From the IMG/VR virus record IMGVR_UViG_3300025012_000026, positions 1 to 64,000 of that record: DNA of 64,000 nt; one strand, 5' to 3'. Position numbers and translations under genes: made by a program. Of the stretch, positions 8,016 to 43,329 are shown piece by piece; position 1 is the stretch's first letter, and each line of letters opens with the position of its first letter. A model generated the notes under the pieces. It did no database searches. It worked only from the letters and a program-made list of their open reading frames with translations, and had not been told where the DNA came from.

Positions 8016-9257
8016 TTGCCCGATAAACCATGTCAATCACCTTACATTGATTCAAATGTATTAATGGATCACCCTAAAAAAGTTTTTGAAGATTTTTCAG
8101 ATTCGGGGATACAATTATCAGGATTTGTTCTTGGTGAATTAGATAATTTAAAGAAAAATGGTAAAACAGAAGAGGTAAAATTTCAGGCCCGTAGAGCGAC
8201 TAGATATATAAACGCTAATCGAGACAAAATTACATATATCATCGATGAAACAGATTATAATAATCTTCCTTCATGCTTTGATAAAGGGATTATGGATAAT
8301 AAAATAATCTCACTTCTGAAGGTTTTGTACGAAAAAGATAATAATACAATCGCTTATAGTAATGATATGTTATTTAGAGTTAAATGTGATTCTCTTAATA
8401 TTCCTTGTAAACAATATGGTGGTGAAACATCTAATGATATTTATAAAGGATATCAAAAATTATCAGGAGATACAAACTTCATAAATAACTTTTTTACAGA
8501 CATTGATAATGGCATCAATAAGTATCAATTTGTAGTAAATGAGTATCTAATATTTTATAATTCAGATGAAAAGAAAGAAAATGAATATAGATTTAATGGT
8601 AAAAAGTTTGTCGGATTGAAACTACCTGATTCAAAAGTTATTAAAGGTAAGAATAGTTTACAGAGATGTGCTTTAGATTTGTTGAATAACAAAGAGATAC
8701 CAATAGTTTGTGTCAACGGAAAAGTCGGGAGTGGAAAGACTTATTTGTGTGTAAGAATGGGATTGCATCAAACAGTAGATAAAGGTGATTTTAATAAACT
8801 TTTAGCAATTAGAGAAGCAATAGGCGAAGGAAAAGAAGTTGGATATCTTAAAGGCACATTTGAAGAAAAAACAGAAATGTTCTTTAAACCAATTGTTCAT
8901 TCATTAGAAGGTGGAGAAAGAGAATTACAAATCCTTTTATCCCGTGGAGTGTTGGAATCTAATATTCCATTTTACCTTAAAGGAACAACATACGATGAGA
9001 CAGTAATTGTTGTCGATGAATCTGAGGATCTTTCGCCCAAGCAATTAAAACTTGTCGGTACAAGACTAGGGGATAAATCTAAAATTTATTTAGCAGGAGA
9101 TTATAAACAATCTAGTGTAGATTCTTCAGAAAGAAATGCTTTAGTACAAATGTGTAATGAATTAAAAGGAACTAAAGAATTTGGGTGCATTTATTTAGAA
9201 GAAGATGTAAGAAGCGTTGCTTCTGGTATATTCTCAGATTTATTTGAGAAGAAATAA
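8016..9257 (+). CDS. phoH: PIN domain plus PhoH-family ATPase
   Basis: N-terminal IDSNVLMD/ELDNLK/DNKII PIN motifs; Walker A GKVGSGKT; IVVDESEDL; AGDYKQ. Confidence 0.9.
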   Translation: MPDKPCQSPYIDSNVLMDHPKKVFEDFSDSGIQLSGFVLGELDNLKKNGKTEEVKFQARRATRYINANRDKITYIIDETDYNNLPSCFDKGIMDNKIISLLKVLYEKDNNTIAYSNDMLFRVKCDSLNIPCKQYGGETSNDIYKGYQKLSGDTNFINNFFTDIDNGINKYQFVVNEYLIFYNSDEKKENEYRFNGKKFVGLKLPDSKVIKGKNSLQRCALDLLNNKEIPIVCVNGKVGSGKTYLCVRMGLHQTVDKGDFNKLLAIREAIGEGKEVGYLKGTFEEKTEMFFKPIVHSLEGGERELQILLSRGVLESNIPFYLKGTTYDETVIVVDESEDLSPKQLKLVGTRLGDKSKIYLAGDYKQSSVDSSERNALVQMCNELKGTKEFGCIYLEEDVRSVASGIFSDLFEKK

Positions 9258-10231: not shown

Positions 10232-10871
10232 TTTTATTATTAATTTACAATCTAATTTATGAGGTGATATGTTATGTTTACTGAAGGAGATGGTTAATAT
10301 GTTTACTGAAGATGAACGTGGAAACATTTGTGAACATGAATTGGATTAAACAAATATTATTAACTTATAATAGATAGTAATATTAATTTCTTTATAATAA
10401 TTATTACAAAGTAACATAAAAATTGTTATCATCAGTAAACTTCCCTCTATAAATTGTTGTGGTGATGATTTTTGGAAATTGCATAAGCCAAGACAGCAAC
10501 AATAAAAACTTGTTTTAGGGTTTGATAAAATTGGGTCAATGTTAGTGCAATTACAAACCCTCCCTAAAATCATGTGCATAAGTTAGTAAGACCTTGAAAG
10601 ACAGGCATTGCTCTGATAAAGAGTATGAGGTTTATAGATGCACAAAATTCCCCTCATCACTCATTGTTTGTTCTTTATGGCGTTAATCACAGTTCATTTA
10701 AACTTTAGTGATAGAGAAAAATGGCATACTGCAATGAGACTGATGAAATATATAAGTATGCCAAAAGAGATAAGGAGAATTTATAGGGGTATAATTCTCC
10801 TTCATACAGAAAGAATTGAGTTAATTACTCTAACAAAGAAGAAAAATACAAATTGAAAGAAGGAAAACAAT

Positions 10872-11570
10872 ATGTCTAATTCACAAAATTCACAAAACAC
10901 TAATTCAACAATTTCACTAAAAGAGTCCTTTCGCACATTGGTTTATATTGATAAAACTATTTCATCTCTAACTTCATATCTTTCTAATAAAAATAATTCT
11001 ATTTCTGTACTTGAACAACATCTTAAAGAAAAGTCCAATCCAGAAGCAAAAAATGAGGAATTAGATACAACTACTATTAAAGAATATCCAGATGCTTCAA
11101 CTGTAGATGTAATTAATCTTATTCAAGACTTGATTTCAGAAAAGACAAAATTAGAAATTTCAGTAGAGTTAGCAAAAAGAAATATAGTAATTCAAACTAA
11201 GGATAATAAAAATCTTAGCTTAGATTCTGCTATATCAAATGCAAAACAATCTAGAAATTTAGCTAATGTATTAAATAGTCTTATCAATATAAAAACAGAC
11301 GAGAAAAAGACTGTCGCACAAGGATTTAAATTCAATCAGGAAGGTAATGAGACTCCATATAGGTATGATGTAGTAATTACTAAAACAATTAATTTTGATA
11401 GAAGTATTGTTAGTGATAATTATAAGTCATTACTAGAAAAAGCTGATAAACTTAGTATTTCTATTGAAAAATCCATGATGGAAGAAATTGTGGAATATGA
11501 ATTCCCTTATAGCATTCATGATTCAACAGCAGATATTGTGAGTAAATATTTATATTCTATTGATTTATAA
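10872..11570 (+). CDS. helical hypothetical protein, DIP1984/DUF6847-like
   Basis: AAGGA RBS; pattern SLKESFR..., LDSAIS.AKQSR, GFKFNQEGN, KADKLSISIE recalled from a widespread clostridial uncharacterised family. Confidence 0.7.
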   Translation: MSNSQNSQNTNSTISLKESFRTLVYIDKTISSLTSYLSNKNNSISVLEQHLKEKSNPEAKNEELDTTTIKEYPDASTVDVINLIQDLISEKTKLEISVELAKRNIVIQTKDNKNLSLDSAISNAKQSRNLANVLNSLINIKTDEKKTVAQGFKFNQEGNETPYRYDVVITKTINFDRSIVSDNYKSLLEKADKLSISIEKSMMEEIVEYEFPYSIHDSTADIVSKYLYSIDL

Positions 11571-11641
11571 TCTTTATCTAATAATTAACCATGACAATTA
11601 ATTAGTAGAGATGCCTAACCACATCTCTACTAATTAAAACA

Positions 11642-12069
11642 ACTAACCAGAAGCAAAGCAAGATATAGACTATTTATTTGGACATCTGAAATTAGATGTA
11701 AATTCAAGTTACCATATTCAAACATTGCAAAATAGTGCAGGTTATGTATATTAAATACATAATAATAAAACAAAATTTAGGTTTGCTGTCACAAGCAAGA
11801 AGAATCGCTAATCTATCACTAAGCGCAAAATCATTATTCACCAATACGATATGACATTAGTACATTATTCATAAATACGACAATCGTTTCGTTAATCACC
11901 ATTTGATAAATTTTAGGATTTTAAATCCTTATAGAAGAACAAATATTAAAAATAAAGTATTTTAAAAGATACTCTCTTAGAAATAAGAGGATATTGATTT
12001 TTAATAAATAAATGGATAATATAATTAATTAAGAAAAATAGTCTTATTTTGCTTGCTTTTCTGGTTAGT
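11642..12069 (+). ncRNA. candidate large structured ncRNA
   Basis: ~30 bp closing helix 11642-11675/12036-12069 with nested helices and several hairpins; no ORF of 60 aa or more. Confidence 0.7.
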
Positions 12070-12158
12070 ATATAAAACACTAAATGGGTTTGATAGTACA
12101 ACCCATATAAAAACTATCATTATAAACTTTTCTCTAATAAGGAGATGATTTTTATCAA

Positions 12159-12527
12159 ATGGATAAAATGAAACTAAACAACAAAACTAAACTAAGTACA
12201 GGAACTCAAGTACAAATTCTTGACAACTCAAATTGGAATGGTTTATTTGCAATTGTTGATGATATCGTAGATATTGATAATAATAATATAAATATTCCGG
12301 TGCTATATTGTGTTAGTAAGCCGACTGAGAAATATTATGTTTATCCTGAATTGGAGGATAAGATTAGGATTGTCGGTGGTGATATTGATAATAATGATTA
12401 TGACATAGAAAATGCTGATACTACTTGCCCTATTTGTAAAAATAGTAATAAGAGATACTGGTTGGCATTCTTTTATGATAAGACTTATTTAGTGTGTAGG
12501 GATTGTTGGTATAGTGAATTGATTTAG
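12159..12527 (+). CDS. hypothetical protein with C-terminal zinc finger
   Basis: AAGGAG RBS; CPIC...CRDC. Confidence 0.6.
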   Translation: MDKMKLNNKTKLSTGTQVQILDNSNWNGLFAIVDDIVDIDNNNINIPVLYCVSKPTEKYYVYPELEDKIRIVGGDIDNNDYDIENADTTCPICKNSNKRYWLAFFYDKTYLVCRDCWYSELI

Positions 12528-12549
12528 TTTAAGAAAGTGGGGATTTGAT

Positions 12550-12729
12550 ATGATTACTAAGGAAAAAGAATTTGTTTATATTTACAATCAATTTCAGTCA
12601 CAATTTTATTTTTCTAAAGGAATTTTACCTTTAAAAGTAGGAAATGGAAGTAAAGGCGATACATATACTATGTTTAAAAATACAGATGAAGTAAAACAAG
12701 CATTCGGTGAATGGTGTCGTAGGAAATAA
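12550..12729 (+). CDS. small conserved phage protein (59 aa, below the track cutoff)
   Basis: Manual translation MITKEKEFVYIYNQFQSQFYFSKGILPLKVG...FGEWCRRK; paralogous to 43682-43909. Confidence 0.6.
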   Translation: MITKEKEFVYIYNQFQSQFYFSKGILPLKVGNGSKGDTYTMFKNTDEVKQAFGEWCRRK

Positions 12730-13751: not shown

Positions 13752-13922
13752 TTAGTGTCATAGATGTCACTTGAGAAGTTTTAAAAAGTAGGTTAAACAA
13801 GGTTTTATTTTAGGAGTCGGGACATGAATGTCACCAATGTCTGAATCCCTTATGCCAGTAGGTGTAGAGGGGTTTACTTGTTGTGTAGGCATTTCGAGAT
13901 GATGAAAGGCGGTTATGCGATA

Positions 13923-14741
13923 ATGGCAAAGGATAAGAAAATAGGAATATATAAAATAACTAATATAATAAATAATAAAGTATATATTGGTCAAAGTCAA
14001 GATATAGATACTAGGTTAAGAGGACACAAAAGCACATTAAAAGCGAACACTCATTTTAATATTCATTTACAAAGAGCTTATAATAAGTATGGTATTGATA
14101 GTTTTACATATGAAATTCAAGAAGAATGTAGTGAGGATATTATTAATGAGAGGGAATCTTATTGGATAGAATTTTATAATAGTAGAGACAGATTTCACGG
14201 ATATAATATTGATTATGGTGGTACTAAAGATGTATTTTCAGAAGAGCATAAAATAAACATAAGCATTAGAAGAAAAGGGATGTATGAGATTGATGCAACT
14301 AATATAGATATTACATATTTAGAAATTTTGGAAGTTTTAAAACAAAAGACAAAGAATGAAAAATTATTGCTATATGCTATGCTTATAAATAGTAAAAGAT
14401 ATTCAGATGATAATGGTGTTTTCTATATGTCTTATAAAGAAATGTCTAGAAAAACTGGAATTAAATCAAAAAATACTTTAATAAAAATTATTAATCAGTT
14501 TAATAATAGTGGAATTATTAATATTGTAAGTAGAAATACGATACAAACAAATTCTTACAAAATAAATTATAGTATTGATGATGATAATAAAGAAAAGTTT
14601 ATTGTGAATAAAGAAGAAAACAATTACTTAAATTCATTTGTAAAGTGCTTGTTTAAGTTTTATAATCGCAAAGAGCTTAAAAAGATGTTAAATGAAAGAT
14701 ATTATTTAAGTATATGTAGGTTATATAAAAGTATAAAATAA
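13923..14741 (+). CDS. GIY-YIG endonuclease with C-terminal HTH
   Basis: IGIYKITN...VYIGQS, ERESYWIE, GYNI. Confidence 0.85.
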   Translation: MAKDKKIGIYKITNIINNKVYIGQSQDIDTRLRGHKSTLKANTHFNIHLQRAYNKYGIDSFTYEIQEECSEDIINERESYWIEFYNSRDRFHGYNIDYGGTKDVFSEEHKINISIRRKGMYEIDATNIDITYLEILEVLKQKTKNEKLLLYAMLINSKRYSDDNGVFYMSYKEMSRKTGIKSKNTLIKIINQFNNSGIINIVSRNTIQTNSYKINYSIDDDNKEKFIVNKEENNYLNSFVKCLFKFYNRKELKKMLNERYYLSICRLYKSIK

Positions 14742-21363: not shown

Positions 21364-22320
21364 ATTCCAAGAGTTGGAAAAACAGTGAAAGAACCTAAAT
21401 TAAATATTCCAGATAAAATATATTGTAGGATGTGTGAGGATTATAAAGCACCTTCTGCATTTTATGAATGTACTAACCCCATGTTAGATAAGAATGGTTA
21501 TATGTCAGTGTGCCGTGATCATTGCAATGAGATTTTTGACAACTATTTTTCTATACATAATAGTTTAGAAATTGCTTTAAAGTTGACTTGTCAAGATTTA
21601 GATGTTAGATATAGTGAAGATGCTTTAAAATCTGCAAAAACACATATGGAAAGTATAATGACAAAGGGTAAAAATGCAAATAAGGTTTTCGGGTACTATA
21701 AAAGTAAGTTAAGTTCAACAAACAAAAGCAATGAAAAAATGGAATCTTTTAGATATAAAGATAGTAATTTTCTAAGACAAGAAAATTTCGATATTGAAAA
21801 TGAAGATGTTGATGACGACCTTATTCTATTTTGGGGAAAAAGTTTTAATATAGATGATTATATATTCTTAGAAGCTGAATTATCTGCGTGGAAAGAAACC
21901 CATAAATGTGACAATCAAGCTGAAATAACTTTATTAAGAGAAATATGTATTAAAATACTTGAAATTAGACAAGCAAGAGATAAGGGTGATGGCGTTGGAG
22001 GTCTTCAAAAAGAATTACAAGACTTGTTAAAAACAGCATCTCTCGACCCTGCAAAAGCCAATGCAGCGAGTGCAGGGAAATCTCATGATTGTTTTGGTAA
22101 GTGGGTTAAAGATATTGAACAATTTAAACCTGCTGAGTGGTTTGAAGATCAAGAAAAATATAAAGATATGGATGGTTTTATACCTTATATTAAAAATTAT
22201 ATAGTTAGGCCAATTGAAAATTTTATAACAGGAGTTAGAAATTTCGTTGTTGATGATAATATTGATGCTGATTTAGACAGTGTGGATGTCGGAAATAATG
22301 ATGGTGATTATAATGGGTAG
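21364..22320 (+). CDS. YonG-like protein (terminase small subunit candidate)
   Basis: Immediately before terL; N-terminal CxxC; GAGGTG is the RBS, so the start is probably ATT 21364. Confidence 0.65.
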   Translation: MPRVGKTVKEPKLNIPDKIYCRMCEDYKAPSAFYECTNPMLDKNGYMSVCRDHCNEIFDNYFSIHNSLEIALKLTCQDLDVRYSEDALKSAKTHMESIMTKGKNANKVFGYYKSKLSSTNKSNEKMESFRYKDSNFLRQENFDIENEDVDDDLILFWGKSFNIDDYIFLEAELSAWKETHKCDNQAEITLLREICIKILEIRQARDKGDGVGGLQKELQDLLKTASLDPAKANAASAGKSHDCFGKWVKDIEQFKPAEWFEDQEKYKDMDGFIPYIKNYIVRPIENFITGVRNFVVDDNIDADLDSVDVGNNDGDYNG

Positions 22321-24121
22321 ATCATACAGTAAATTTGAAAATAATTTTAGCAAATATGCTGGTCATAGCGATCAATCTAAGGCACCAAAAACAATGATCA
22401 AAGACAAAGAAATAAGTGAACAGCGACAAGATAATTTAATAGACTGGACAACATTTTATCGTAGAAATATACATCGCTTCATACAACATTATTTTGGAGT
22501 TCAGCTTTATTGGTATCAAGTTTTATGGATTTATTTTATGAGTATTTCTGAGAATTTTGTTACAATCGCATCGAGGGCAGCAGCAAAAAGTTGGTTGATC
22601 GCTGTATTGGCCTATGCTCGCGGAGTGCTCTACGCGAATTCTGAAATTGTAATTGTAGCAACAACTTTAAAACAGGCAGCTATTATTTTTGGGAAAATGG
22701 CAAGATTGAAGGATGATTATCCTAATATAGCAAGAGAAATTAAAACTTTTTCAGATACTCAAAATAATTGTAATTGTACACTACATAATGGCACAACCAT
22801 TAAAATTGTTGCATGTTCTGAATCTGGACGAGGGGAACGTTCAACATTTACAATAGGTGAAGAATTTCGAATTATGGATAAGAATAAGTTTGACTCAATT
22901 GTAAAACCTTTTGCATATGCAAGGCAAACTCCATACTTAAAAGATCCTAAATATTCAAGTATAAAAGTTCTAATAGAAGAACCAAGGCAAATTCTTATAT
23001 CTTCTGCTTATCACAAAGGATTGTGGTGGTATAAAGAAACACTAACTACTATAAAAATGATGTTACAAGGCAAAGACTCTGGATTTATTGCTTTTGATTA
23101 CTTAATTGCAATAAAGCATAATATTAAAACTTTAAAAGTAATAGCAAGAGATAGGGCTACTATGGATTCAATTACTTTTTTAGAAGAATATGAGAATATA
23201 CCTTGGGGAGAAAATAGTAACGCTTATTTTAAGTTAGAAATGTTTCAAAAAAACAGGAATTTGAAGAAAGCTTTCTATCCTTTAAGAAATGACATGCTTG
23301 ATAAGAAAAAAAATCCTAACGACATCAAACGTGTAGAAGGAGAAATAAGAATTGTTTCGGCTGATATTGCAACTAGAAAAAATGAAAAAAATGACAATAC
23401 TATAATAAGTTGTATTAGAGCGATACCAACTGCAAAAGGTTATGAAAGAGAATTTGTTTATCAGGAGGCACATCAAGGGGAACATACTGGAAAACAAGCA
23501 TTAAGAATTAAGCAAATTTATCATGATTTTGAAGCTGATTACATAGTATTAGACTTACAACAAGCAGGAATTGCAGTTTTTGAAAGACTAGCTGTGCTTA
23601 CTAAAGATGAAGAAAGAGGAATAGAATATGAAGCTTTTACAGTTTTTGACCATAAGTCATTAGACAAAAAGTTAATTGAAGAATTGCAAGAAAAAACTTT
23701 GGGTTTAAATGCAAAACCAGTAATTTATCCAATAATGGCAAATTCTAAATTAAATAATGATATAGCTGTTGATTTTAGAGATAAATTACAAAGAAGTATG
23801 TGTAGTTTTCTTATAGATGATAATGATGCAGAAGTATATTTAACGAAACACAATAAAGAATATGCAAATAATAATGGAAAAGATGTAAATATTAATATAT
23901 GGTTCGTTAAACCATATATTGAAACACAACTGTTAATTAATGAATCAGTAAATCTAGAATACTCTTTTAATGGTGGTAACATAAAATTAGATACTGTTGG
24001 GACTGCTAGGCGTGATAGATATACGTCAAATTCATATGGAAATTATTTTATATCATTATTAGAATTAGATTTATTAAAAAATACTAATGATGACTACGAT
24101 TTTGTATTTTCATACTCATAA
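22313..24121 (+). CDS. terL: terminase large subunit (YonF-like)
   Basis: IASRAAAKS Walker A variant, IGEEF Walker B, VSADIA nuclease motif, RRDRYTS. Confidence 0.9.
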   Translation: MGRSYSKFENNFSKYAGHSDQSKAPKTMIKDKEISEQRQDNLIDWTTFYRRNIHRFIQHYFGVQLYWYQVLWIYFMSISENFVTIASRAAAKSWLIAVLAYARGVLYANSEIVIVATTLKQAAIIFGKMARLKDDYPNIAREIKTFSDTQNNCNCTLHNGTTIKIVACSESGRGERSTFTIGEEFRIMDKNKFDSIVKPFAYARQTPYLKDPKYSSIKVLIEEPRQILISSAYHKGLWWYKETLTTIKMMLQGKDSGFIAFDYLIAIKHNIKTLKVIARDRATMDSITFLEEYENIPWGENSNAYFKLEMFQKNRNLKKAFYPLRNDMLDKKKNPNDIKRVEGEIRIVSADIATRKNEKNDNTIISCIRAIPTAKGYEREFVYQEAHQGEHTGKQALRIKQIYHDFEADYIVLDLQQAGIAVFERLAVLTKDEERGIEYEAFTVFDHKSLDKKLIEELQEKTLGLNAKPVIYPIMANSKLNNDIAVDFRDKLQRSMCSFLIDDNDAEVYLTKHNKEYANNNGKDVNINIWFVKPYIETQLLINESVNLEYSFNGGNIKLDTVGTARRDRYTSNSYGNYFISLLELDLLKNTNDDYDFVFSYS

Positions 24122-24153: not shown

Positions 24154-25779
24154 TTGACAAAAAACAATACACCTCAAATAGAAACATCCACCTCCCCTCA
24201 ATTCTCAACATCAAATGAAATTGAATTAAACTCATTATCGTATAATTCATATTCATTTTCAACAGGAAGATTAGATACTGATAATATACCAATGAGCGAT
24301 TTAAAACAATATGTCAAATATCCAATGATATATAATGAAATATTGAGAACTATATCAAGGCAGTCCTACGGATTAAATGGTATATATGGTCAGAGTATCG
24401 ACAAAATGGTAGCTCTTCCGACATTATCTTACATAACTACATTACGCAACAAAACACCACAAATGAAAGATAAAAAAAACAAATTTAACACAATACTTAA
24501 AATATTGAATATTGATAGAACTACTAGAGATATTTTAAGACATCTATTTATCGACGGGCAATATATCGGGATCTTGAGGGATTCTACGGCAAGTAATAAA
24601 AATTTAGATACTGGTTCAATGGTAATAGAATCTATTGACAGATTAGAAGGATTGTCATTAGATGATAATTTTATGATTCAACCTTTAGATTTAGATTATT
24701 GTAAAATAGTTGGATTTCAAAACAATATATCCATTGCTGCATTTGATATGATGTACTTTGATCAATTTAAATACGGAGGATTACTTAATGAAATTAAAAA
24801 TTATCCTCGTGATTTTGTAAAAGCGTATATGAATTATAAGAAAGATTGTAGTAAAAGATGGTTTATTCTTGATTATAGAAAAACTATTGCATTAAAAGCG
24901 AAAGCTAATGAAATTGATGCATATGGGATTCCTTTTGGCATCTCGGCTTTTGTTGATATGAAAGCAAGTGATGACTATAACGATAGTCAATATCAATTAA
25001 TTAGTGAATTAGCAAGCAGTATATACTACCTTGTCTTACCTAGTGGGGAAAAAACTGGGTCTTGCTCATTAAATTCAACTCAGCAAAAAGAAGTTATCGA
25101 AGCATTTAAAGGTGCTGTAAAAGTTAATACTAGTGGAAATATTTCTAGGATTTCAACACTTAGTCTTGCTCCTGGTACAACAATTAATAGACTAGCTAAA
25201 GATGCGTCGTTAATTACGGATACTTTGAGCGACGAAAATATAAAGAAGATATCGACTAATTTAGGTATTGCTAGTTCTGCTTTAAATGCTGAAAGTAATA
25301 GTGCTAATTTGGGAAGTTTACAAATTAATTTAGACTTGATTTCTGCACAAGTGTTTCAGCATATTAATGAAATAGCAAGGGAAGAAACTAGAGTAATTAA
25401 TGAAAACTTAGGTATTACACCTTTTAGCTATATTGATATAAAGTTCCTTCCAATTACATGGTTAAATAAGAAGGATGTTTATGAAAAAGCAAAAGACCTA
25501 TACTTAACTGCAGGGGGAAGCAGGATATTTTATATTGCTGCAGCCGGATTTGATCCAGTAGATTATCTTGGAATTTGTGATCAAGAAATTGAGGATGGTT
25601 ACGATGAGCAGTATGCTCCCCATATAACCTCGTTTACAGCTACAGACAGTGCTGATACATCTAATCCAGACAGTAATTTGGGTGGAAGGCCACCGAAAGA
25701 CACTTCAGAGTTAAAAGAATCAGGATTAACCACGAAAAATTTAAAGAGTAATGAACAGAGAGTTAAGAATAAAAAATAA
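24154..25779 (+). CDS. portal protein (YonE-like)
   Basis: Follows terL; 541 aa; YGIPFGISA; C-terminal GGRP. Confidence 0.8.
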   Translation: MTKNNTPQIETSTSPQFSTSNEIELNSLSYNSYSFSTGRLDTDNIPMSDLKQYVKYPMIYNEILRTISRQSYGLNGIYGQSIDKMVALPTLSYITTLRNKTPQMKDKKNKFNTILKILNIDRTTRDILRHLFIDGQYIGILRDSTASNKNLDTGSMVIESIDRLEGLSLDDNFMIQPLDLDYCKIVGFQNNISIAAFDMMYFDQFKYGGLLNEIKNYPRDFVKAYMNYKKDCSKRWFILDYRKTIALKAKANEIDAYGIPFGISAFVDMKASDDYNDSQYQLISELASSIYYLVLPSGEKTGSCSLNSTQQKEVIEAFKGAVKVNTSGNISRISTLSLAPGTTINRLAKDASLITDTLSDENIKKISTNLGIASSALNAESNSANLGSLQINLDLISAQVFQHINEIAREETRVINENLGITPFSYIDIKFLPITWLNKKDVYEKAKDLYLTAGGSRIFYIAAAGFDPVDYLGICDQEIEDGYDEQYAPHITSFTATDSADTSNPDSNLGGRPPKDTSELKESGLTTKNLKSNEQRVKNKK

Positions 25780-41895: not shown

Positions 41896-43329
41896 ATGAT
41901 GAAAAAATGTTTTTTAGATGAGTTGCCCAGATGGGGAAAAGCAGAAAAAGTAACAGATGGTAAACAAGGGACTATTAATTGGAAAGAATCAATAGGATAT
42001 ATTGTTAAATTCATTTATGATAATATTGAAGGGGAAATTGAAATTGTTGATTATAACAAAAGTTATCTAGATATAAAATACAAAGATGAGGATATATATA
42101 ATATATATTCAGGCACTTTTACAAAATGTCAATTAGGTATTTTACTAAATAAAAAAACTAAAAAGTTTAGAGTAGAAATAGGTACTATATTTAAAGACAA
42201 CAAAAGAGATATAATTATTACAAATAAAGAATATAAAGATAATCCTTATAATAAAGGAAATAAATTGAAATGGTATAATTATAAGTGTAATAAGTGTGGA
42301 TGGGATGAAGGATGGATAGAAGAAAGTGTCTTAATAAGAGGACAAGGTTGTTCATGTTGTACTGGTCAAATAGTAGTAGAAGGTATAAATGACATTCCAA
42401 CAGTTGCTCCTTGGATGGTAAAATACTTTCAAGGAGGGTACGATGAAGCAAAATTGTATACAAAAGGTTCTAATCACAAAATATATCCAATTTGTCCAGA
42501 TTGTAATAAAGTAAAAAATAAATCTATGGAAGTATGTTCAATATATGCCAATCGCTCTATTGGGTGTAATTGCGGAGATGGAATTAGTTATCCTAATAAA
42601 ATTGTATTTCATCTATTGAGTCAATTAAATTCTGAATTTGTTTCTGAAGCTTCTTTTAATTGGACTACAAAAAGATATGATTTTTATTTATCCTTATTTA
42701 AAAGTATTGTAGAGGTACATGGTTTACAACATTATAAAGAAAAACAAAGATCAAAAACAAGTAGAAATCTCAAAGAAGAACAAAAAAATGATAAATGCAA
42801 AGAAGAATTAGCAAAAGAAAATGGAATTAATAATTACATAATAATTGATGCTAGATATTCTGAGTTAGAATTTATAAAAAGTAGTATATTAAATAGTAAA
42901 CTAAATGAATTGTATGATTTGTCAAAAATTCAATGGATTAAATGTGAAGAATTCGCATTGTCGAATTTAACTAAAAAAGCATGTGAATTAAAATGTAATA
43001 ATTTTAGCACAACTAAAATTGCTGAGATAATGAAATTAGGGGTAAGTACAGTTATAGCATATTTAAAAAGAGGAACGAAAATAGGATGGTGTAATTATAA
43101 TCCCAAAGAAGAAATGATTAAGGCAGTTACTAATAATGGCAAAATGAATGGTAAACCAGTAGAAATATTTAAAAATAATATTTCTTTAGGAATATTTGAG
43201 AATTGTCATGAGTTAGACCGACAAAGCGAAAATGTTTTTGGAATTAAATTAAATTATAGTTCTATATCATCTGTCTGTCGTGGTGAAACAAATCATTATA
43301 AAGGATTCATTTTTAAGTATGTTATTTAA
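41896..43329 (+). CDS. free-standing homing-endonuclease-like protein (zinc ribbons, Vsr-like, NUMOD1)
   Basis: GCSCC, CPDC; RYDFYL...IVEVHGLQHY; C-terminal ISSVCRG...HYKGFIFKY. Confidence 0.75.
   Translation: MMKKCFLDELPRWGKAEKVTDGKQGTINWKESIGYIVKFIYDNIEGEIEIVDYNKSYLDIKYKDEDIYNIYSGTFTKCQLGILLNKKTKKFRVEIGTIFKDNKRDIIITNKEYKDNPYNKGNKLKWYNYKCNKCGWDEGWIEESVLIRGQGCSCCTGQIVVEGINDIPTVAPWMVKYFQGGYDEAKLYTKGSNHKIYPICPDCNKVKNKSMEVCSIYANRSIGCNCGDGISYPNKIVFHLLSQLNSEFVSEASFNWTTKRYDFYLSLFKSIVEVHGLQHYKEKQRSKTSRNLKEEQKNDKCKEELAKENGINNYIIIDARYSELEFIKSSILNSKLNELYDLSKIQWIKCEEFALSNLTKKACELKCNNFSTTKIAEIMKLGVSTVIAYLKRGTKIGWCNYNPKEEMIKAVTNNGKMNGKPVEIFKNNISLGIFENCHELDRQSENVFGIKLNYSSISSVCRGETNHYKGFIFKYVI

Follow-up and report, generated by a model that had tools for sequence, protein, structure and literature searches.

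A large structured RNA probably forms an inherited cassette with the gene of an acidic helical-bundle protein in phages and islands of gut and rumen Bacillota

In a phage genome segment of 64,000 nt (the window; positions 1 to 64,000 of IMG/VR record IMGVR_UViG_3300025012_000026), the tract at 11598-12069 is best explained as a large structured RNA of ~470 nt. It lies on the strand of the gene at 10872-11570, forms an inherited two-part cassette with it and is most likely the 3′ continuation of its transcript, an explanation that is considered probable as a whole. Comparative analysis demonstrates three of its components, namely a predicted fold at the RNA level, made up of an initial hairpin (H1), a long closing helix (P1), inner hairpins and a conserved open centre, strong purifying selection on the tract, and a strict positional link of the RNA to one protein family across deep divergence. 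The gene (plus strand, as are all features of the tract) encodes an acidic 232-residue helical-bundle protein without a named family, the open reading frame (ORF) being present as listed in a first-pass annotation made from the letters alone, and more than a hundred loci of phages and gut bacteria carry the gene and RNA pair. The window has a G+C content of ~27%, with identical IMG/VR contigs of up to 230 kb.

The structured tract begins directly after the stop codon at 11570. No coding potential was detected from this stop to the next gene (starting at 12159), TAA, TAG and TGA occurring in all six frames with at least eight TAA codons plus other stops in every frame of the tract. In aligned relatives the variability by codon phase was 0.171, 0.164 and 0.173, giving no 3-nt periodicity, and with all stop types in all six frames a recoded gene using reassigned stops was likewise rejected. 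The fold energy of 11642-12069 was −92.7 kcal/mol against −60.3 ± 4.7 for shuffled sequences (z = −6.8), the minus strand giving z = −4.7, and since much of this excess is probably due to the long inverted repeat it cannot alone separate RNA from DNA. H1 (11598-11637) consists of a perfect inverted repeat (11598-11613 and 11622-11637) forming a 16-bp stem with 100% complementarity and an 8-nt loop, CCUAACCA (11614-11621), while the 5′ strand of P1 (11642-11675) pairs with its 3′ strand (12036-12069) over ~32 bp with two bulges and G.U pairs in the minimum-energy fold. Both elements had been picked out in the first-pass annotation. H1 was rejected as an intrinsic terminator, having no U-tract (AAACAAC follows instead) and with no terminator-like site called in 10300-12700; since no terminator lies between them, gene and RNA are probably co-transcribed.

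Enclosed by P1 are the predicted hairpins H2 (11682-11699), H3 (11741-11763), H4 (11782-11799) and H5 (11915-11929), followed by two adjoining hairpins (11956-11973 and 11974-11989, together 11956-11989). Between H4 and H5 lies the most conserved strand of the tract (11803-11902), the densest run of invariant columns in alignment A3, which is predicted to be mostly unpaired with short and weakly conserved helices only (composition A38 C22 G9 U31). The degenerate repeats noticed earlier in this centre were recovered, the motif CAUUAUUCA-NN-AAUACGA being present as two 18-nt copies at 11832-11849 and 11863-11880, which are 89% identical and 31 nt apart, and as a third, weaker one at 11889-11901. 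In addition, AAUCGCUAAUC occurs at 11803-11813 with a relative of it at 11887-11899. No tandem array was found in the tract by Tandem Repeats Finder (TRF). The idea that the centre is distinctively G-poor was dropped for the window, the G content being 12% against 13% in the gene; distant RNAs of the same design are G-depleted (21.7% against 26.4%).

A protein search of IMG/VR and metagenomes gave 95 loci, including about 30 distinct close relatives, with structure checks carried out on 29 distinct variants. Across ~500 nt, about 30 distinct relatives share 70-86% identity with the tract, the conserved span (~11575-12075) being present in all close relatives and conservation stopping sharply after the 3′ arm of P1. 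A profile of the tract searched with nhmmer found exactly one copy in every locus with a protein at least 42% identical, always on the gene strand and starting a few bases after the stop codon (58 of 58 copies in the same orientation), with no second copy elsewhere in the 64-kb window. The relatives carry two classes of protein allele, 70-89% and 42-46% identical to the window protein, and both are flanked by the same RNA, which remains 75-86% identical where the protein falls to 42-46%, and by the same 55-nt leader. This leader (10813-10871, plus strand) carries the ribosome-binding site AAGGA at 10860-10864, and most relatives, loci with the divergent allele included, keep the ~55 nt that precede the ATG at 84-98% identity. 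Because both alleles are flanked by the same RNA and leader, constraint on the non-coding tract is no weaker than on the coding sequence. The tract is under strong purifying selection.

The stem of H1 was ~11-16 bp in all 29 variants, with more than a dozen stem sequences and many G.U pairs beneath a conserved loop. Folding each variant separately recovered H2-H5 in nearly all of them, some with compensatory changes such as ACAUCUG/CAGAUGU to ACAUUUG/CAAAUGU, and the hairpin at 11974-11989 refolded likewise. H2 persisted in 27 of the 29, with compensatory forms in L041 and L013, for example, while H3 was kept with a varying loop size and a G.U variant in five lineages. H4 changes from UUUGC/GCAAA to UUUAC/GUAAA between sequence types in a compensatory manner, and H5 has either AGGAU/AUCCU or AGAAU/AUUCU stems, with G.U intermediates. 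In the region of the adjoining hairpins (11956-11989) a hairpin around a UCUCUUAGA core takes three alternative registers among relatives. For P1, 98.6% of cells were paired in 29 relatives, with the non-canonical positions being G.U in 62 cases against A.C in seven. The inner hairpins of the first-pass annotation were largely recovered, as they refold in nearly all variants, but two nested helices proposed with them were not supported: one (11772-11779/11907-11914) is made of A/U pairs only, is absent from the minimum-energy fold and has a 5′ strand that most relatives do not keep, and the other (11944-11953/11997-12006) is paired in only ~50% of relatives. In a sister clade (L044, L048, L050, L052 and L057), homologous to the window clade by nhmmer with E-values down to 5e-13, the inner P1 sequence differs and still pairs.

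The loop of H1 is complementary to the 3′ tail of the tract over 7-10 nt, and both change in step in L044, L048, L050, L052 and L054. The loop and tail pairs observed are CUAACCA/UGGUUAG, UCAACCA/UGGUUGA, UUCAACCA/UGGUUGAA, UAUCAACCAA/UUGGUUGAUA and UAUCUAACCA/UGGUUAGAUA, and this co-change argues that H1 belongs to the RNA. In the window CUAACCA occurs twice, in the H1 loop (11614-11621) and in the 5′ strand of P1 (11643-11649), with the complementary UGGUUAG occurring once, at the end of the P1 3′ strand (12061-12067). Since there is only one UGGUUAG, the loop-tail and P1 pairings would be mutually exclusive in one molecule, and as the UGGUU of the tail is also part of P1 the complementarity could lock the ends, act as a switch or bring two molecules into contact.

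The same design is found in distant homologues (25-30% protein identity) from Faecalibacterium, Oscillospiraceae, Lachnospiraceae and rumen phages. In the distant metagenome loci, with 25-31% protein identity and a G+C content of 35-50%, the downstream sequence is unalignable to the window, yet all have an uninterrupted 15-28-bp helix starting 10-50 nt after the stop codon and closing 430-495 nt; in one subclade the closing helix starts after an extra ORF of ~90 codons for a coiled-coil protein (see below). A scan of genomes, taking one genome per species, gave 80 loci of which 75 were distinct, nearly all from gut or rumen Clostridia, cultured members of Faecalibacterium, Blautia and Oscillospiraceae among them. 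Isolates with the cassette include Faecalibacterium intestinale CLA-AA-H281 (L162), F. tardum CLA-AA-H175 (L165) and Oscillospiraceae LBM23126 (L173). In 66 of the 75 a closing helix of 14 bp or more lies right after the gene, with spans of 313-510 nt and helices of up to 35 bp, which confirms the first-pass statement that genes of this kind in gut clostridia have long non-coding stretches behind them. Across the distant loci overall, helices of 14-35 bp start 5-50 nt after the stop codon, or after the one extra ORF, and close 310-510 nt.

For P1, covariation support comes from outside the window clade. In alignment A4 (G2 type) RNAalifold gave 34 consensus pairs, of which 24 show compensatory change on both sides, and P1 of this type was 97.5% paired with double changes in 15 of 24 pairs, a result reached by none of 300 shuffles and falling to 38-50% pairing when the partner strand was slid by 1-3 columns. 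Two hairpins after the G2 P1, one with a conserved AGCGAU loop, pass the same controls. Alignment A8 (Oscillospiraceae/Faecalibacterium type) gave 41 pairs, 24 of them compensatory, with conserved G.U pairs. Scores from duplexfold were uninformative here as their z-scores describe global duplexes. In an RNA-first search a pattern built from the helix core alone found three IMG/VR loci, and the protein gene was directly upstream in 3/3. Sequence clustering divides the RNAs into several types that co-vary with protein subfamily. An AAAUGG motif ~16-26 nt before the P1 3′ strand is common to the window type, the sister clade and the Oscillospiraceae type and is present in 35 of 77 RNAs against six of 356 background windows, counts that are not independent. 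Common descent of all RNA types is likely.

Whether the selected structure resides in RNA, and on which strand, was addressed with helices seeded with Watson-Crick pairs alone, a procedure neutral between strands. At the other positions in 59 distinct helices there were 69 G.T, 20 A.C and 22 other combinations (p = 1.8e-7, an optimistic value because the helices are related, the direction nonetheless being uniform), and a wobble-tolerant seed gave 99 G.T against 21 A.C. This excess of G.T over A.C points to a sense-strand RNA. Taken with the constant orientation, the hairpin covariation, the single copy and the lack of a recombinase nearby, the wobble asymmetry supports a sense-strand RNA rather than an inverton, a miniature inverted-repeat transposable element (MITE) or an origin, and the preference for an RNA fold over a DNA inverted repeat voiced in the first-pass annotation is upheld by the same wobble asymmetry, covariation and invariant orientation.

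A number of observations weigh against this explanation. Within the window clade P1 is almost invariant, with a double change in one of 22 pairs; in this clade it tells little either way about structure, and covariation support for this helix comes from the more distant relatives. On a plain MAFFT alignment RNAalifold predicts no pairs in the A/U-rich inner 5′ domain, which was therefore assessed by per-variant folding. Matches between the window clade and the G2 type reach only E = 0.004-0.35 by nhmmer, being co-linear and in the conserved centre, and a covariance model built from the 5′ domain of the G2 type matches G2-like loci only and not the window clade. As such, the distant RNAs are putative homologues of the window RNA, and the claim made from these sequences is that of a conserved design co-inherited with a homologous protein. 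Tolerance of G.T pairs is also compatible with selection on a structure formed by single-stranded DNA. The acidic isoelectric point (pI) of the protein is atypical of an RNA-coating protein, which weakens the case for direct RNA binding without excluding it, and the window itself has no transfer RNA (tRNA) gene.

The RNA would be bounded by its closing helix, which runs without interruption for at least two turns and may act as a stalk for double-strand-specific (RNase III-type) processing that frees the RNA from the messenger RNA (mRNA) and leaves its ends base-paired and protected. Pairing of the H1 loop with the 3′ tail would then either lock the ends or switch with the closing helix, while the conserved single-stranded centre with its repeats could be the surface that binds a partner, be it the protein of the cassette, a host factor or another RNA. 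A role in the take-over or protection of the host translation or tRNA machinery, or in phage-host conflict, may be envisaged, the former because the cassette recurs beside phage tRNA arrays. More tentatively, the cassette would define a class of ribonucleoprotein or RNA machine in which an RNA of 330-510 nt, excised via its terminal helix, works with the acidic helical-bundle protein (and with the small coiled-coil protein in one subclade), perhaps in a higher-order assembly via the H1 loop and 3′ tail, and manipulates host translation or tRNA metabolism or counters defence, RNA and protein having co-diversified across gut and rumen Bacillota phages. This is a possibility that falls well short of being the expected outcome.

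The position of the RNA, which directly follows the gene on one strand with no terminator between, together with the strict co-occurrence of the two, would also suit a purely cis-acting 3′ untranslated region in which the fold stabilises, localises or autoregulates the upstream mRNA and the RNA has no separate function; H1 could then serve as a 3′ protective hairpin. This is unlikely, as protecting an mRNA would require far less than 400-500 nt with numerous conserved helices and a highly conserved open centre, the coding sequence is less well conserved than the RNA, and in one subclade an extra ORF stands between gene and RNA. This ORF, conserved at ~90 codons (MAF...VIANFQALL) and encoding a coiled-coil protein, was located at L070:3681-3959, L073:829-1104, L074:1320-1598, L076:752-1003, L079:3659-3931, L085:3658-3924 and L090:907-1179, and may be a third component of the cassette.

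The protein encoded at 10872-11570 has no match in Pfam, PHROG, NCBIfam or PADLOC and no sequence-profile relative in the PDB, and no member of its family, which comprises 919 clusters at 50% identity (E ≤ 1e-3), bears a name. The AlphaFold2 model (mean confidence, pLDDT, 88.5) has four long helices and beta-hairpins. The first-pass annotation had likened the protein to DIP1984/DUF6847 helical oligomers, and this may hold at the level of the fold, not at that of sequence models. Comparison of the model with the PDB by Foldseek gave chain C of 3KDQ, an uncharacterised protein of Corynebacterium diphtheriae, with a probability of 0.99, a target-normalised template-modelling (TM) score of 0.70 and a root-mean-square deviation of 4.5 Å, but with E = 0.32 and 9% identity, and on these models it was the sole structural neighbour found convincing. 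The predicted fold superposes on 3KDQ, whereas the window protein is ~80 residues longer with extra beta-hairpins, and no sequence-profile link was found in PDB, Pfam or NCBIfam searches. The DIP1984/DUF6847 model was absent from Pfam and NCBIfam matches at E ≤ 1 for 19 family members and also for 10 more distant ones. The entry 3KDQ is presumably the product of locus DIP1984. TolC-like channels, the top Foldseek matches by E-value, were dismissed with TM scores of only ~0.2, and the neighbours among viral models are uncharacterised phage proteins. The family is uniformly acidic with a pI of about 5 (range 4.7-6.8).

The divergent protein alleles belong to L051, L053-L055, L058, L059, L061 and L062, phages from the same metagenomes, and the pattern looks like cassette-style allele replacement or diversifying selection. 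Two sharply differing alleles between the same flanks are common in arms-race genes, the cassette behaves as an autonomous two-part unit moving among unrelated phage and prophage contexts, and the centre of the RNA holds two degenerate motif repeats, all of which would suit a pair resembling a toxin-antitoxin system, or one for abortive infection or counter-defence, with the RNA acting to neutralise or license the protein. Such a pair is nevertheless improbable, there being no credible PADLOC defence match and no ToxI-type tandem array by TRF, with the RNA lying after the gene rather than before it and the protein having a helical-bundle fold that is not that of a known endoribonuclease. A type III toxin-antitoxin system (ToxIN-like) in particular was rejected on the absent TRF array, the downstream position of the RNA and the lack of a PADLOC or Pfam toxin match.

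That the tract is a DNA-level element, such as an invertible segment, an iteron origin, a MITE or a cruciform repeat, is very improbable. Long inverted repeats do flank about 360 bp, short motifs are repeated in the A/T-rich centre and both strands fold better than shuffles; against this stand the single orientation of all copies, one copy per locus with none elsewhere in the window, no adjacent recombinase, the excess of G.T over A.C (69 to 20) on the sense strand, inner hairpins that covary around conserved loops, and the same design in chromosomal islands next to host genes. Family searches found no recombinase domain in the neighbouring genes, and on this and the 58/58 orientation an invertible segment was rejected, as was a MITE or insertion element, since the tract occurs once in the window and once in each locus, at a fixed position.

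Comparison with described RNAs places the tract outside existing families, so that "undescribed" in the first-pass annotation holds with respect to Rfam, which explains none of it. None of 4227 families (Rfam 15) matched the tract at gathering score, and at E ≤ 10 the region 11400-12300 gave three chance-level matches only (E ≥ 3.7), to eukaryotic snoRNA and miRNA models on the minus strand. ROOL (Rumen-Originating, Ornate, Large) RNAs resemble this RNA in being structured, several hundred nt long and encoded by phages and prophages in gut and rumen Bacillota, often near tRNA islands, a location seen here for several relatives and not for the window itself. GOLLD is likewise a large phage and prophage RNA found near tRNA islands, as here in many relatives, whereas it has about 800 nt with a conserved 3′ half and the present element is gene-coupled with 330-510 nt. 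Despite this likeness in size, carriage and frequent tRNA neighbours, a very divergent member of ROOL or GOLLD is scarcely credible, since neither model matches the window or the 47 related loci scanned at gathering score or at E ≤ 10, and ROOL, for which no protein partner has been reported, has a different helix plan, this RNA being closed by a single long terminal helix, in several sequence types, and always lying directly behind one protein family.

Protein genes inherited beside a specific non-coding RNA are found in the pairs Ro60/Y RNA, OLE RNA/Oap proteins and TnpB or IscB with their guide RNAs. The 5′ and 3′ ends of Y RNA form a long stem, as in this RNA, and in TnpB-type systems the RNA lies directly 3′ of the gene, as here. 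In contrast, the TROVE, Oap, RuvC or other recognisable domains of Ro60, OLE and TnpB/IscB systems were not found in the window protein, no Rfam match to Y RNA, OLE or omega-type RNAs was obtained, and the protein is instead a small acidic helical bundle whose putative partnership with the RNA is known from gene adjacency. A description of the cassette was not found in the literature on DIP1984, DUF6847, 3KDQ and new large phage RNAs, a check outside which lay the supplementary tables of PMC10690425. This catalogue of 10,006 unnamed viral candidate RNAs could, in those tables, contain fragments of the RNA. The cassette RNA is new as a sequence family, of the general kind of ROOL and GOLLD.

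In the window the cassette is set in an early or DNA-metabolism region, with PIN-PhoH, HU, GIY-YIG and exonuclease genes close by. A fusion of a PIN domain and a PhoH-like ATPase (413 residues, 8016-9257) lies three genes upstream. The phage carries several mobile nuclease genes, including a GIY-YIG endonuclease with a winged-helix tail (13878-14741) and an HNH/homing-endonuclease-like protein (41896-43329), and the window also encodes a terminase large subunit (22280-24121), a portal protein (24154-25779), a helicase and homing endonucleases. Upstream of the gene, a stretch of 640 nt with few ORFs (10232-10871) is built of mosaic blocks (~10439-10645, 10646-10806 and 10813-10866), each ~77-98% identical (the longer ones ~83-95%) in differing subsets of relatives and occasionally lying 2 kb distant from the gene; this stretch could hold small genes or more non-coding elements. 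Downstream, a separate conserved block with a GGGUU-N-AACCC hairpin (12085-12107) stands ahead of the next gene. In L010 (5214-5440) and L039 ~190 nt are inserted between the RNA and this block, a separation which shows that the RNA is independent of the gene downstream.

While no tRNA was found in the 64-kb window, tRNA genes or arrays adjoin the cassette in L044 (2712-2942), L057 (2192-2871), L071, L075, L077 (20-2951), L103 (2814-2963), L119 and L164 (4135-4207). An abiF RNA motif (Rfam RF03085, 41.6 bits) is present at L048:2181-2217, ~240 nt downstream of the 3′ end of the RNA. In Faecalibacterium the cassette is at the edge of a small island beside the host TraX and YitT genes. In L162 (Faecalibacterium intestinale) three ORFs of 351, 330 and 114 residues without family match (273-2690) precede the cassette and host TraX and YitT follow, which would fit a small island better than a complete prophage. 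Among GenBank phages (50,697 records) no match was obtained by blastn of the locus or tblastn of two family proteins.

Few large, highly structured RNAs have been described from bacteria and phages, and the phage-linked ROOL and GOLLD lack both a function and a known protein partner. The cassette described here would add another large phage RNA, this one with a genetically fixed protein partner that offers a direct experimental handle on the RNA, and it places in context a protein family that counts over 900 clusters at 50% identity and is so far without annotation. Prophages and islands of abundant Clostridia from the human gut and the rumen commonly carry the cassette, and because some of these bacteria are in culture (isolates of Faecalibacterium, Blautia and Oscillospiraceae) it is accessible to tests in living hosts.

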